A DNA stretch of 64,000 nt. Origin: Bugula neritina (taxonomy: Eukaryota; Animalia; Bryozoa). This document shows, in pieces, positions 10,036 to 16,000 of the stretch. The stretch spans positions 6,047,190 through 6,111,189 of the forward strand of contig OZ037771.1 of assembly GCA_964035545.1 (NCBI GenBank). Reading direction: 5' to 3'. The position numbers and the translations under genes were made by a program. Within the stretch, counting starts at the first letter, position 1. Every line of letters begins with the position of its first letter. A model generated the notes under the pieces. That model ran no database searches, was not told the DNA's origin, and worked only from the letters and a program-made list of their open reading frames with translations.

Positions 10036-13000
10036 TCAGCTAGTCCCAGCACGAGAAAATGTGTCCAATAAATGGTCCAAGGGTCTTCCATTAACATATA
10101 GATTCCACATTCTAGAGAATAACTTCTCCAGATTCTGAGCATAAGTCTTGACGTTGAAAAGCATACTTTCTGTCTTCAGTATCCAGACTTTAGCTCTCAC
10201 AGCCTTCAGACTAAAAATAGAATGAACAGTTCAACAGCACCGCGAATAAACACACATACTATATAATACATGTCAAACTTAAAGGCGAGCAATACCAAAC
10301 ACCGGTTTTGAAGTCGACTGTTTTTATTAGATGAAACTGCTACTATATATAATCCTATAGTTTGAAACCAATATGCCAGAAGACAGACTTACTAGTCTGA
10401 TTCTGTGCCCAGCTTAACAGCTATGTTCTCGTAGTCTTCATAGGAGGTGGCAATCAGCTCGGGCATACCAAGGCACTTTAGTTGTGAGGAGGCAACTCTA
10501 GATGCTAAGCTCTCCACTGTAAATCACAGAAATAAGAACAGTTATAACACACAGCTTCATCCCAAGCATACATAATGACTAGATATAGAAGATTGTAGAT
10601 ATGGCTGCGGTGGAAAAGCTGGGACTGAACTGTAGTGAGGTCTACTATCAAACACTACTCTGTATATAAGTAGGGTTAGCGAATCCTCTCTAGATTTATC
10701 TTGCACATGTTTTTGTCCAAACAAGAAAAGGATTACTTGAAGGAGGTTAACAGGTGCAGAGAAACATAACTGAATAGCAACTCACAAGGCAGGGTGACCA
10801 TTGGTGTGCCGGCCCACAGCACATCTACTCCCGTTGTATGTCCATTGCACAGAGGGGTGTCCAGACACACATCTGCCAGCTGACCCCTCCTTACATGCTC
10901 TTCCTTGGGGGCAACTGGACTGAAAACAATGCGTGACGCATCTATTCCTTTCTACAAGCAAATTCAAGGGCTATATGGTATACATCGTACAGTTAGCAAG
11001 TAACATATTTAGTATGCCTAGCATGTTGAACAGTTTAAATCTTTCAAGATATACTGCTGGTAGGATTATAAAGTATGTCACGGAAATATTGCAGTCACGT
11101 GGAGCAGCAAGATTTCCTTATTTGTTCTAGCAGAGGTGCAAAGCTATTAGAGTCGAGTGAACAACTAACAGCGGTCTACAATGCATATATGTGAAAACCA
11201 AGTAGTGCAATAATGGTAGCTGTAACACTAGTCAAGAGTGAGTCAGGCAAGTTACCTTTACACAAAACTGTATAACATTAGCTTCTCCTACAGCAGGAAA
11301 CCGGAGCAGCCAGAGGACGGCGTTGGGCACCCTCTTCAGTATATTGCACCAAACAGTTAGTATCACTGGATCTATCTTGTAGAGTTGGTTAAAGTTACAG
11401 AAAACAACAGCATTCTCTGGCAGACCATACTGCTTACGAGTCGTCACCACAGGATTCTGCAACACCTCCTCACCAGTTGCAGCCTTGGTGTGAGTTTGGT
11501 TAGTAGTGAGCCCATTGTGCACGAGTACTCCATCGCCAATGTCTGCAGCTGGCTGGTTGTTGTTGATCATTTCAGTAACGGCAATTGTTGTTGGCAGTTT
11601 TAAAATGGGTGTTATCACTTCCAAGCTGTCACCTTTACCATCTTGTTTGATTGTATGTTTCAAATCCTACAAGTACAGAGCAGAAATAAATATTGAGGGT
11701 TACAGAAATAGCTGTAGCAATTCTCTAATACAATTTTGAAACAAAGTGGATATGAGCAACACAATAATAACTGGGAATCTCACATTCAGCTGTTACGAAG
11801 TAGATGTAGTGAGGTCTACTATCAAACACTACTCTGTATATAAGTAGGGTTAGCGAATCCTCTCTTAGATTAATTTGGCACATGTTTAAATCTCTTAGAT
11901 GAGTAAACACCTAACAGAGGTTATGCAGTGCACCTGGTACTACCAACAGGTAAGCAACACATACCTCAACAGTCTCTGCGATGCTGACTAAGGGTTTAAG
12001 GTTAGTGGCATTGATGATGGAGACATTGTCTTTGAGATCAACAGCAGCAGCGTCACTGGTGGGAGGTATAATGGCTCTCTCGACCATGTGGGGGAACATT
12101 TGCCTGAAAAATAGATTTAGCAGCATGAAAGGGATGACAACTCCCTGAGACAGATTACTTGATGGCTACCCAAAGGACTAGTGGGAATAAAAAGACCTGT
12201 ACAAAACACAAACATTATTGAATGATCATGCATTTGAGCACTTACCTGTGCAAGATAACTAGGCTTGTAACATTATAACAAAATAGCTTGTTAGTTGAGA
12301 CAAACTCCACTCAAATTCTTACCAGTGATCTCCAATGAAGAATGTGTGAGGCATGTAGGCCAACTTTTCACTATAATGTTGTGCATGCTCTATGGGAGAG
12401 GTGGTGGAGTCTGTGATGATGTAGTCCATATAAGAGGCTCCACTAGTGCCGGGATACCCCAGCCACATCACCTGTAAGGAAGCAAAGGCTATACAAAACA
12501 GGACTAACAGGTGAGCAGAACATCAGATATATGTAAACAGAGGGGTAGAGGTGTGGTAAAGGGAACATGTGGCAGTAGTTTGAACCAGCAGTGCACATAC
12601 GCACAGCTGGCTTGATTACACAGCCAACTTACTTTAGCTGAGGTTTCTGAACGTTGAGAGGATATTTGCCAATCAAGATAAAAGGTATTCTCAGCAAAAA
12701 AAATTCAACAGCGGTAGAAACATGACATTCTAATGCAGGTACCTGAATAGGTGCCGGTTTAAGAGCAAACAGCTCATTCCGGGCTCCTTTAGTGTATCCA
12801 TTCATATTGACAAGAATGTGGATGCCATCAGCATTGATACGATCTGCAGCTTTACCATTGCACGGTATTCTTGATAAGTCCACAAAGTGTTCAGCTTCTT
12901 TCGTAATCTGCAAGACATGAAATATTGCATTCAAAACAGAGCCAGTATAAAGTGGAATTCAAAACACAATGATAAACATCACAGAAGTATTTACAAAAGA

Positions 13001-16000
13001 TCTTGACCGTATAAAACCAAGTGAATCCAAATGGCTGGTTGCAGGTAAATTTAAAAAGGTTTGAATTTTTATTTGACTTTAGTGTGCAAGTTTAAACACG
13101 ACTACAATCCTCATCCTGGAGGGTTAACATACCTTGGACCTGAAAGTGGTGCTGTCATCAGCTGACAAGGCATAGCAGAACACCTCCACCTTACTTTTGT
13201 CATGCATGCCCGGTATACTCTGCATCAAATGTGATGTCGGGTGATTACCAAAGTCAGAGCTGACATACCCAATTCTCAGACGTCCTGTTAATAGAGATAC
13301 GAGCAATGCATTAACTACCCACCACAGTGTGTCACAGGGAGTATTGGCAGAGTTTTTGAGTGGCAAATAGGCTGGAAACACAAGTTTTAGGCTGGCAGAA
13401 GTGAGCCAACTCGAGAGTCATACCATGAAATCGAGCAATAAACAGAAAATAACTGGGAATCTCACATTCAGCTGTTACGAAGTAAATGTAGTGAGGTCTA
13501 CTATCAAACACTACTCTGTATATAAGTAGGGTTAGCGAATCCTCTCTTAGATTAATTTGGCACATGTTTAAATCTCTTAGATGAGTAAACACCTAACAGA
13601 GGTTATGCAGTGCACCTGGTACTACCAACGTATGACTAGCAATACATACCACCAGGAGATGCCAACTGAGTGGGGTGTGTATAAGCTCCCCTGCGGAGTA
13701 TGACTATCTTTTCCTGGCAGAGTGTGGCATGCCTACTGGCTATGCCTTTTCGCTGATCAGCTGTTAGTGGGTACAGCATACTATGGTGGGGATGAACTGA
13801 AGGTAGCCGGTTCTTCTTCAGCTGGTCAGAAACTATGTCAACGAGCTTCTGCATTCTCTCATCATAGTCCGTCCAGTCACACACAATCTACAAGGCAGGT
13901 AGGCGTCAGTTTACTGGTGCTGACAGATCATGTGATGTAAGATTCAACATTACCATTGTTCAACTGTTGGCACTGTAGCTAACTGGTGCTGTTAGTATTA
14001 TAGCCTCACTGTAACACAGTTCAAATCATACTCAAACCACTACCTCATTTAACTCACCTGCAGACAGTGTGCCAGATTGCAGAAGGCATCAGGGAAGTCC
14101 GGCTTGAGTTTCAAAGCCATGCGGTAGCTTTGTATGGCATCTTGCACGTTGCCACTGTCTTTGTGTATGCTTGCTAGATTGCTGTGTGCATCAGCAAATG
14201 CTGGGTTAATCTGTATAGCCCTGGTATAGCACTGCATGGCACCCTGGACGTCCTGCATTTCCTTCAGCGTGTTACCCATGTTAGAGTAAGCATCAGCAAA
14301 TGTAGGCGATATCCTAGTATACAATAACGACCACGATAAACTCAGCAAGTCACAACATCTTAGAACAAGGATATGAAATGTTAATAGGTTAGAATGTAAA
14401 GTTATGCCCAGTTCAATATAGCATGGAGCACCAAGGAATACATCAATACTTTATGATAAACCGCCATGCAGAACCAGTTGACAAAAAGGACATGCCAAGC
14501 AAACAATAAAAGCGACAGGAAATGACAGCTACAAGAGAATGTGTGAGGGGCAGTTACCTGATAGCTTCTTGGTAATGTGCTAATGCCTCTTGCAACTTGC
14601 CTTGCATTTGCAGGATGCTAGCTAGGTTAGAATGTGCAGCAGCAAACTCAGGAAATACCTAAAACCCAGTGGTTACAAGCATAACTGGAAGTGAACACAG
14701 ACGCCCACAATGCACCTCAACCATGCCAGGTACCAGGGTAGGGACTGGCTGCATGTAGCCAACCCTTCCCGGCAGTCATAGCGCATGCTAGTCAGGCGGA
14801 GATGAAGCCAGAGTATAGCAAACTATCACAGGAGATAGTGGTGACAGGTAACAAGGTAACAGTGAATAGTACAGGCCAGAATAATGCACATACATGAACT
14901 GTAGGCTGACCAATTCAAAGGACAAGACAGTTAATGTTGGGAGTAAGCATTAGCTGGACCAGCACCCCTGGGCTAATAGCACAAGCTGCATAGTGCACAT
15001 GCATGCCCTACGATGTTGCAGCACTGGTATAGTATACTGATCCAGTAACCAACCTAATAGCCTCCTTATAATGCCTCAGTGCATCGTGCAGGTTACCTTG
15101 CTGCTGCAACACACTAGCTAAGTTTGAGTGTGCAACAGCAAACTCTGGGTACACCTGAAATACACATTGCCCATGATCTACAGACCTTACCATATCACAG
15201 AACAGTGTTTCGAGGGCACTCGGGGCCCAGTTGCACATATTGTTTTATTACTAATAGAGGGAAAAATATTTTAGTAAACTATTTATGTTTTTCTATATAA
15301 AAAGAACTTGCTGGGAGAGTTTACTAACAAGGCCAGTTGACTTTACCTCTAAAGCCTTCATATACAGTCGTACAGCTTCTTCAGTGTTGCCTTGCTCCCT
15401 TTTGATATTGGCCAGGTTATTAAGGGAGTCGGCGTGTGTAGGGCAGAGCCTCAGTGCTGTGTTGTACATATCTTCTGCTTCTTGAACCTGTTCAATCATT
15501 GTATTATAGCTTATGTACTACTGGAGCTCAATAGTTGATTCACTTAGTTATAGTTTCCTCTATACTTTTTATTCACTCAATAAATTAGCTGAAATAGAGG
15601 ATGATTTTGCAGTACAAAATACTAAGCCTTTAAATCCTATCTTTCAATTAGTGAAGAGTCTCAACAGATAGTTTCAACAGCAATATAGCAGATTTCTGGC
15701 AGCTCATTAGTTTTCTAAGAAGGCTAAGCATATTAATATTTAGACATATATAATTGTATATAATAGAGATGTGGAGACATAAATTCATATGTGTTGGTGT
15801 CAAACAATACAAACACAGAAGTAAATTTAAATGTTTCAAATGATATAGCAACGTTTGACACCCATATTGCTAGTAGAGTTGCAATATGGGCTCTAATCGG
15901 TGCATACTATCTAATTATTACCTTAGTAGCGCAGCTTACCTTGCCTTTCTCTTTCAGGGCATTTGCCAGATTGCAATATGCATCAGGAAAGTTGGACTGC

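Follow-up and report, generated by a model that had tools for sequence, protein, structure and literature searches.

Three probable SNORA62-type genes for box H/ACA snoRNAs within introns of the O-GlcNAc transferase gene of Bugula neritina

A stretch of 64,000 nucleotides (nt) from the bryozoan Bugula neritina (contig OZ037771.1 of assembly GCA_964035545.1, forward-strand positions 6,047,190 to 6,111,189; hereafter the window) carries three similar blocks of about 130 nt within one gene for O-GlcNAc transferase (OGT). What are these repeats, and what would they do? A sequence-only reading had proposed that they are paralogous box H/ACA small nucleolar RNAs (snoRNAs), predicted to guide a pseudouridine (Psi) in 28S ribosomal RNA (rRNA). 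Anatomy, family resemblance, copy number, host gene and rRNA complementarity have now been computed, and the copies, termed A, B and C, add new members, in an unreported host gene, to a family of guide RNAs that is already known. It is very probable that each is an intronic gene for a box H/ACA snoRNA of the SNORA62 (E2)/snR82/ceN58 family, with the processing and targets proposed below. The case is modestly interesting: the kind of gene is ordinary and its host unreported, the copies differ only in the second of their guides, and gene conversion has left signs.

Anatomy of the repeats and their place in OGT

The minus strand of each copy, which is the OGT sense strand, reads in order 5' hairpin, H box of the form ANANNA, 3' hairpin, ACA and three further nucleotides to the end of the repeat (Table 1). 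The ACA lies directly after the 3' hairpin in all three. Alignment of the repeats and folding thus agree with the coordinates and hairpin–H box–hairpin–ACA layout proposed earlier, including the H boxes AGAUAA in copy A and AAAUUA in copies B and C. Two predicted hairpins joined by an ANANNA hinge are found in A, B and C, and a pocket with two-sided rRNA complementarity 14–16 nt from the H or ACA box, another mark of the class, is found in the 3' hairpin and in the 5' hairpin of B and C. The apical loops (UAAUCCUUUU, UUUACU and UAUAUAC) contain no UGAG motif of the CAB box, so a nucleolar rRNA guide fits better than a small Cajal body-specific RNA.

One or more of the copies could nevertheless be silent or decaying pseudo-snoRNAs that never enter stable particles, redundant copies being free to decay and the outer pair of the 5' lower stem being U.C in B and C against U-A in A. 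This is unlikely, given that all three retain an intact 3' pocket along with their two boxes and two hairpins, that indels and broken stems are absent from every copy, and that each copy is sense-oriented within a spliced intron of a housekeeping gene.

The host gene was identified from its exons, which were queried singly against Pfam, while introns were placed by reading frames and GT-AG boundaries. Minus-strand pieces of open reading frame around the repeats match Glyco_transf_41 with E-values of 2e-50 to 3e-28, and the matches are colinear along the profile (positions 1–78, 77–130, 129–188, 185–234 and 290–421); an upstream minus-strand piece matches TPR families. The host is therefore an OGT (GT41/TPR) gene on the minus strand, and the snoRNA copies lie on its sense strand. 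As first proposed, each copy occupies a different intron, and the three introns have separate GT-AG boundaries. A full-text literature search of partial coverage returned no paper with OGT as a snoRNA host, and an Rfam scan of positions 7000–21000 gave no match to any further RNA family. The TPR-coding part of OGT also contains a 109-nt direct repeat of 72% identity (14556–14664 and 15052–15160), corresponding to duplicated TPR exons.

Copy A starts 26 nt past the 5' splice site of its intron and ends 111 nt short of the 3' splice site; the corresponding distances are 30 and 135 nt for copy B, and 26–33 and 111–199 nt across all copies. Structures that all lie 26–33 nt from a 5' splice site might chiefly influence the splicing of OGT in cis, for instance through intron retention, rather than serve as guides, and mammalian OGT is regulated through intron detention. 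A role of this kind, however, would leave unexplained the boxes, pocket geometry and exact rRNA complementarity of a eukaryote-wide family. It would also sit poorly with homologues in unrelated hosts, namely a KH-domain gene on the environmental contig L085, FAU in sponges and RPSA in humans (PMC4515611), and is considered very unlikely.

The 3' pocket, its 28S target and the SNORA62-type family

The 3' pocket is identical in A, B and C. Its two strands, as delimited in Table 1, include the base of the upper stem, an AAC/GUU pairing that covaries family-wide; the pocket proper has UUCGCU as its 5' part and UGAUAGUAGA as its 3' part. Within GUUUGAUAGUAGA, the GUU is the partner of AAC in closing the upper stem, and GAUAGUAGA is complementary to 28S UCUACUAUC. 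The ribosomal DNA (rDNA) of this species was located through the target sequence, in a unit (L012) with 18S at 1110–2959, 5.8S at 4999–5151 and 28S at 5543–9331. Two registers are exact matches to this 28S. In the first, the pocket pairs with UCUACUA-UC-UAGCGAA around U2690, with 7+7 base pairs (bp) and 14 nt to the ACA. In the second, slid by two, it pairs with UCUACUAUC-UA-GCGAA around U2692, with 9+5 bp and 16 nt to the ACA. By arm energy, each of these registers ranks first among 1136 uridines.

The site is one of known modification. The yeast table lists Psi2340, U2347, Psi2349 and Psi2351 in this region, and both Psi2349 and Psi2351 of 25S rRNA are assigned to snR82 (PMC5699541). Four uridines with the yeast spacing can be placed in the segment in a single way, which equates U2690 with Psi2349 and U2692 with Psi2351. 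A constant offset of 1483 joins eight yeast and human entries of the modification tables in this region, and by this offset U2690 corresponds to human Psi3832, U2688 to human Psi3830 and U2692 to human U3834, a position not in the human modification table used (PMC6182160). The equivalence of the sites rests on these tables and on the unique fit of the uridine positions. In the human table, Psi3830 was measured at 92% and Psi3832 at 100% (PMC6182160); both are assigned to SNORA62/E2 (PMC4515611, PMC6466398). From this complementarity, the 3' pocket is predicted to guide the 28S site of human Psi3830/3832 (yeast Psi2349/2351). The sequence-only reading had anticipated much of this: its 7+7 bp pairing at 14 nt matches the rDNA of this species exactly, its equation of the site with yeast 2349 (snR82) and human 3832 agrees with the tables and uridine spacing, and the shifted register it suggested, two bases downstream, falls on U2692, the equivalent of yeast Psi2351. 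Absence of the complementary segment from the 28S of this species, which that reading had named as a ground for abandoning the idea, was checked, and the segment is present.

Which family the copies belong to is less directly read from Rfam, the check that had been suggested. At gathering thresholds, no Rfam family matched the copies. With E-value reporting over 3.4 kilobases (kb), ceN58 (RF01645) matched them over its full length at 35.6, 32.0 and 30.0 bits, under its gathering cut-off of 60 bits, and SNORA62/SNORA6 (RF00091) likewise at 33.7, 30.6 and 29.9 bits, under its cut-off of 80 bits. The E-values of these matches were 2e-4 to 5e-3 over that length, and no other Rfam family came close. 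A gathering threshold is a curated operating cut-off and not a structural feature. Alignment to the models covers UUCGCUAA and GUUUGAUAGUA of the 3' pocket, the spacing of the ACA and, in the 5' hairpin, the lower stem UGCAC...GUGC. SNORA8 (ACA8), which had been named as the human equivalent, was absent from the Rfam matches at E<=10 around the copies. The related family is instead SNORA62/E2 with ceN58, as the sub-threshold matches and published assignments indicate (PMC4515611, PMC6466398), and SNORA8 is perhaps a functional analogue.

Independent family members were sought by scanning metagenome contigs for both pocket strands 15–45 nt apart. The scan gave 127 matches; from the size of the database about 100 chance hits were expected, so the hits were sorted. 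About half had an ACA exactly 9 nt past GAUAGUA and a hairpin in the gap, and in 55 distinct ACA-bearing hits the nucleotides preceding UUCGC are paired to the 9-nt spacer in the register of the window copies, where the spacing is likewise exactly 9 nt. This lower-stem pairing is kept in 45–53 of the 55 at the five central positions (k=3–7), through GC, AU, CG, UA and GU pairs; in the 53 hits without a family-spaced ACA, it is found in only 30–40%. An alignment of 24 diverse homologues is 84.7% paired in the drawn structure, compared with 59.3% in shuffles and 31–51% in slid controls. It contains 105 double-change cells against 41, and none of 500 shuffles reached 105.

A covariance model (R2) built from these 24 environmental homologues, with no window sequence, matched the copies over their full length at 66.3 (C), 65.3 (A) and 64.5 (B) bits, scores to which 19 model positions contribute by construction, as the homologues had been retrieved by the pocket strands themselves. 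The stems, spacing and ACA box of the model were not part of the search pattern. E-values of these matches are about 1e-18, and nothing else in the window matches. All the features of a SNORA62-type 3' hairpin, namely the pocket strands, the AAC/GUU stem base, the lower stem and the ACA spacing, are found in the copies. The 5' pocket usual in the family (GCAC...pocket...GGUGUC[AG][AG]...GUGUGC in most homologues) is not, only the lower stem being common, and the UAACC/AAACAU pocket of the copies occurs in none of the 56 environmental homologues inspected. Scanned against the rRNA of this species with guessed pocket boundaries, the usual 5' pocket gave weak hits only. It is because of the 3' hairpin, therefore, that the copies would be filed with the SNORA62 (E2)/snR82/ceN58 guide family, below the Rfam cut-offs as they are.

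Multiple copies and changing hosts appear elsewhere in the family. The 3' hairpin closest to those of the window was found at L085:5016–5160 (minus strand), with a similar hinge and lower stem and a different 5' hairpin; it sits between exons of a KH-domain, FUBP-like gene and not in OGT. Several environmental contigs carry two or three SNORA62-type 3' hairpins 170–2200 nt apart (L081:2727–3259, L057:3151–3563, L058:107–316, L022:67–1333, L021 and L068), and in L057, L058 and L081 the clustered copies carry differing 5' hairpins. By these clusters and the L085 copy in its KH-domain gene, multiplicity and host switching are normal for the family, a point also made in the work on sponge SNORA62 (PMC4515611), and multi-copy arrays with diverging 5' halves are common in it.

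In the 216-megabase (Mb) genome, a BLAST search with copy B returned the three copies only, and a pattern scan for both pocket strands found the full pocket in these copies only. The family covariance model also returned only the three, among the 150 of about 75,000 first-look candidates that were scored. The 5' half of copy A is unique in the genome. That a sequence is repeated could mean that a piece of some mobile element or dispersed repeat lies by chance in OGT introns, and snoRNA-derived retrocopies are reportedly known from mammals. The sequence-only reading had itself named a high-copy dispersed repeat in random orientation as grounds for withdrawal. The genome-wide count, with three copies in one gene and one orientation, the unique 5' half of copy A, and block ends at which no poly(A) tail or target-site duplication was seen on reading the sequence, together make this explanation exceedingly improbable. 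One further locus, L018:1500–1540 (G000:C2:14448262–14448296, minus strand), has UUCGCUAAC, a 4-bp hairpin and GAUAGUAG; it is without a lower stem or family-spaced ACA and was rejected as probably a chance match. A dispersed repeat containing TTCGCTAGCAAATAAACTTTATTAGATAGTA, unrelated to the snoRNA, occurs at about ten places on contig C8 between 165 kb and 3.96 Mb.

Several observations weigh against reading the copies as SNORA62-type guides. Their folding z-scores are modest (-1.7 to -2.1), and the lower stem of the 3' hairpin contains one A.A mismatch. In the 7+7 register the upper stem has to open its conserved basal A-U pair, and 3–4 guide bases stay unpaired. Genome-wide searches with RF00091 and RF01645 gave nothing usable, few candidates having been scored and 35 bits not being significant over 216 Mb. 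To these are added the Rfam scores below cut-off, the model positions that match by construction and the partial scoring of candidates in the genome-wide covariance search.

Table 1. Positions in the window of the snoRNA copies, their parts and the host introns
Feature	Position	Strand	Remarks
snoRNA copy A	10628-10759	minus	132 nt, OGT intron 10785 to 10517
snoRNA copy B	11802-11934	minus	133 nt, OGT intron 11964 to 11667
snoRNA copy C	13484-13616	minus	133 nt, OGT intron 13649 to 13285
5' hairpin, copy A	10702-10759	minus	pocket strands CUGUUAACC and CAAAAACAU
5' hairpin, copy B	11877-11934	minus	pocket strands UGCAUAACC and UUUAAACAU; predicted target 18S U106 (5+7 bp)
5' hairpin, copy C	13559-13616	minus	equivalent of the copy B 5' hairpin
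H box, copy A (AGAUAA)	10696-10701	minus	14 nt past the top of the 5' pocket
H box, copy B (AAAUUA)	11871-11876	minus	
H box, copy C (AAAUUA)	13553-13558	minus	
3' pocket, 5' strand (UUCGCUAAC)	A 10675-10683, B 11849-11857, C 13531-13539	minus	pairs with 28S (UA)GCGAA
3' pocket, 3' strand (GUUUGAUAGUAGA)	A 10641-10653, B 11815-11827, C 13497-13509	minus	
ACA boxes	A 10631-10633, B 11805-11807, C 13487-13489	minus	
Host intron A	10517-10785	minus	269 nt, GTGAGT...ACAG
Host intron B	11667-11964	minus	298 nt, GTATGT...GTAG
Host intron C	13285-13649	minus	365 nt, GTATGT...ACAG

The 5' pockets and the divergence of the copies

The 5' pockets differ between the copies. Only UAACC and a stem-proximal AAACAU are common to all three, and the 3' strand at the top of the pocket reads CAAAA-ACAU in copy A and UUUAA-ACAU in the other two copies. 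The earlier description of a conserved TAACC/AAACAT pocket that might be an orphan therefore stands for the shared strands and fails for the rest: the pocket-top strand is not conserved, and B and C have a candidate target.

In a fixed-register scan, the B/C pocket pairs with 18S UUAAA-UC-GGUUAUG around U106 through 5+7 bp, all Watson-Crick. On both sides the pairing starts immediately at the upper stem; it lies 14 nt from the H box and was equalled by 2 of 2000 shuffled pockets. The guide fits a lineage-specific G, UC-GG here compared with UC-AG in most animals, and all 18 rDNA units carry the identical target sequence. From 5' regions of yeast and human 18S that reproduce the listed base at every tabulated position nearby, we take U106 to be yeast Psi106 and human Psi105. 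The equivalent uridine is modified in yeast (Psi106, guided by snR44; PMC5699541) and, at 99%, in humans (Psi105; PMC6182160), and its pseudouridylation has been predicted in Neurospora and in chicken (chicken: PMC2653536). Weighing on the other side, the arms of the 5' pocket are AU-rich and the site ranks second of 1136 by unconstrained duplex energy. On balance, 18S U106 is somewhat favoured as the predicted target of the B/C 5' pocket. The B/C pocket strand UGCAUAAC is also complementary over 8 nt to 5.8S positions 57–64 (L012:5055–5062), just 3' of U54; U54 (human Psi55) was rejected as the main target, this being a one-arm match of 8 nt with no second arm.

For copy A, the fixed-register scan gives 18S UUUUG-UU-GGUUAG around U867, with 5+6 bp including one G.U. 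This match was equalled by 20 of 2000 shuffled pockets, and against it the site ranks only twelfth of 1136 by unconstrained arm energy. From a human 18S sequence that reproduces the listed base at nine tabulated positions, we presume U867 to be human U892. Human U892 is not listed as modified in the human table, which weighs against U867 as the target of copy A. An equation of U867 with human Psi814/815 was rejected, as counting along the human table puts those in another segment. Two alternatives lie in the conserved GUUUUUGGUAAGCAG segment of 28S: U1284, with 7 perfect bp plus 5 bp in irregular spacing, which an offset of 704 equates with yeast Psi966 and human Psi1670, and U1280, with 3 bp plus 8/9. 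The target of the copy A 5' pocket is thus ambiguous.

With respect to the rDNA unit L012 itself, internal transcribed spacer 1 (2960–4998) is about 2 kb long, and the 18S is unusually diverged at otherwise conserved stretches, such as AUCGGUUAUGAAUCC and UUGGUUAGAGAG.

The three copies share a 64-nt block of 97–100% identity, and B and C share a 182-nt block of 99% identity (11766–11947 and 13448–13629). Copy C differs from copy B by one base, after the ACA box. Between A and B, the 3' hairpin is identical at 61 of 61 positions from the lower stem through the ACA. Among these are the mismatch positions and the 7-nt apical loop, all of which change freely from one homologue to another. The 5' hairpin is identical at 37 of 58 positions (64%), those in common being the lower stem, UAACCUC and AAACAUGUGC. 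The upper stems of the 5' hairpins are unrelated in sequence between A and B/C, with compensated closing pairs (UCC/GGA and UCU/AGA), and the intron flanks of copy A cannot be aligned with those of B and C. Similarity between introns B and C, with indels, runs on from the 182-nt block to the 5' splice site (11935–11964 and 13617–13649), and the start of the copy A intron shares TTGCTA.TCA with intron C; the copied unit may have included the 5' end of the intron.

This pattern had been attributed to selection on RNA function. Selection is a fitting part of the explanation and insufficient alone: an identical 3' hairpin, loop included, beside a 5' hairpin only 64% identical and unalignable flanks is more simply explained by partial gene conversion or a hairpin swap than by divergence of uniform age. 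Such an exchange between introns would be recent, and in it either the 3' half of A was made uniform with that of B and C or its 5' half was replaced. The B/C identity is consistent with it, extending 36 nt past the RNA 3' end with the weaker similarity beyond, and B and C would owe their likeness either to very recent copying or to a conversion tract 182 nt or more in length. On the opposite side, strong constraint on a guide for a conserved site could preserve much of the hairpin, the comparison is without an outgroup species for dating, and a tract boundary is not provable from three sequences. Recent exchange, rather than selection alone, is judged the probable source of the identity pattern, with appreciable doubt; it bears on how the copies evolved and not on their identity as snoRNAs.

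The UAACC strand fits both U106 and U867, UUUAA of B/C fits U106 and CAAAA of A fits U867, each of the latter over 5 bp from the upper stem. Since UNGGUUA occurs at exactly two sites in the three rRNAs of this species, 18S U106 and U867, retargeting by a change in one strand is attractive. The paralogues might, as a tentative proposal, have been retargeted after duplication within OGT by the rewriting of one pocket strand, with gene conversion keeping the 28S-guiding hairpin identical. If so, OGT would host guides that couple one constant module to two 18S modules, and U867 (human U892) would carry a pseudouridine absent from the human and yeast tables used.

Proposed pathway and comparison with known systems

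By analogy with intronic snoRNA biogenesis, we infer that each snoRNA would be transcribed as part of the OGT pre-mRNA. Dyskerin–NOP10–NHP2–GAR1 would bind both hairpins and the H and ACA boxes, and splicing, debranching and exonucleolytic trimming would release an RNA of about 130 nt. The 3' pocket would then pair around 28S U2690, or slid by two around U2692, and dyskerin would isomerise both uridines. The 5' pocket of B and C would most likely guide 18S U106, and copy A would carry a different 5' pocket. Expression, processing and modification are inferred in this scheme, and the mechanism of H/ACA RNAs as already known is unchanged by it.

The copies give a phylum for which no snoRNA annotation was found an annotated guide for two conserved pseudouridines of the large subunit, and they add OGT to the hosts of a host-moving guide, alongside RPSA in humans, FAU in sponges and the KH-domain gene of one environmental contig. 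The two hairpins of one RNA diverge in wholly different ways between the paralogues, with only one pocket strand changed, which makes the locus a compact case for how H/ACA guides gain new targets after duplication.

Among known RNAs, SNORA62 (E2)/SNORA6 (RF00091) shares the two-hairpin H/ACA form, the 3' pocket strands UUCGCUAA/GUUUGAUAGUA, the 28S target segment and, in the Rfam alignment, the upper-stem base AAC/GUU and the UGCAC...GUGC pairing low in the 5' hairpin. The window copies differ from it in scoring 30–34 bits (gathering 80), in their host, OGT instead of RPSA, and in occurring three times in one gene. Their 5' pocket is also unlike those of all the environmental SNORA62-type homologues inspected. 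The nematode ceN58 (RF01645) is the best Rfam match, with full-length alignment and aligned guide strands in the 3' hairpin; the copies nevertheless fall under its gathering threshold and the 5' hairpin is poorly aligned.

In yeast snR82, two uridines two bases apart are credited to a single 3' pocket, at 14 and 16 nt from the ACA, like the U2690 and U2692 registers described here. The second snR82 pocket has 25S Psi1110 as its assigned site, whereas those in the 5' hairpins of the window copies point to 18S. The snR82 gene is an independent transcription unit and is not intronic. Sponge SNORA62, within FAU introns, is an intronic invertebrate orthologue with conserved guide and boxes (PMC4515611); it has a single copy per gene, compared with three in OGT, and the host location of SNORA62 changes even within a genus (PMC4515611).

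SNORA8 (ACA8) is listed beside E2 in a chicken snoRNA survey as a functional homologue for 28S-3342 in chicken numbering (PMC2653536), and any likeness to the window copies would lie in the target and not in the sequence family. The uridine predicted for the B/C 5' pocket, in UUAAA-U-C, is the same conserved one that is guided by snR44 in yeast and by ACA36, ACA50 and ACA62 in mammals. These are unrelated RNAs; here the putative 18S guide is on the 5' hairpin of a SNORA62-type RNA and, unlike theirs, matches the lineage-specific G two bases past the target uridine.

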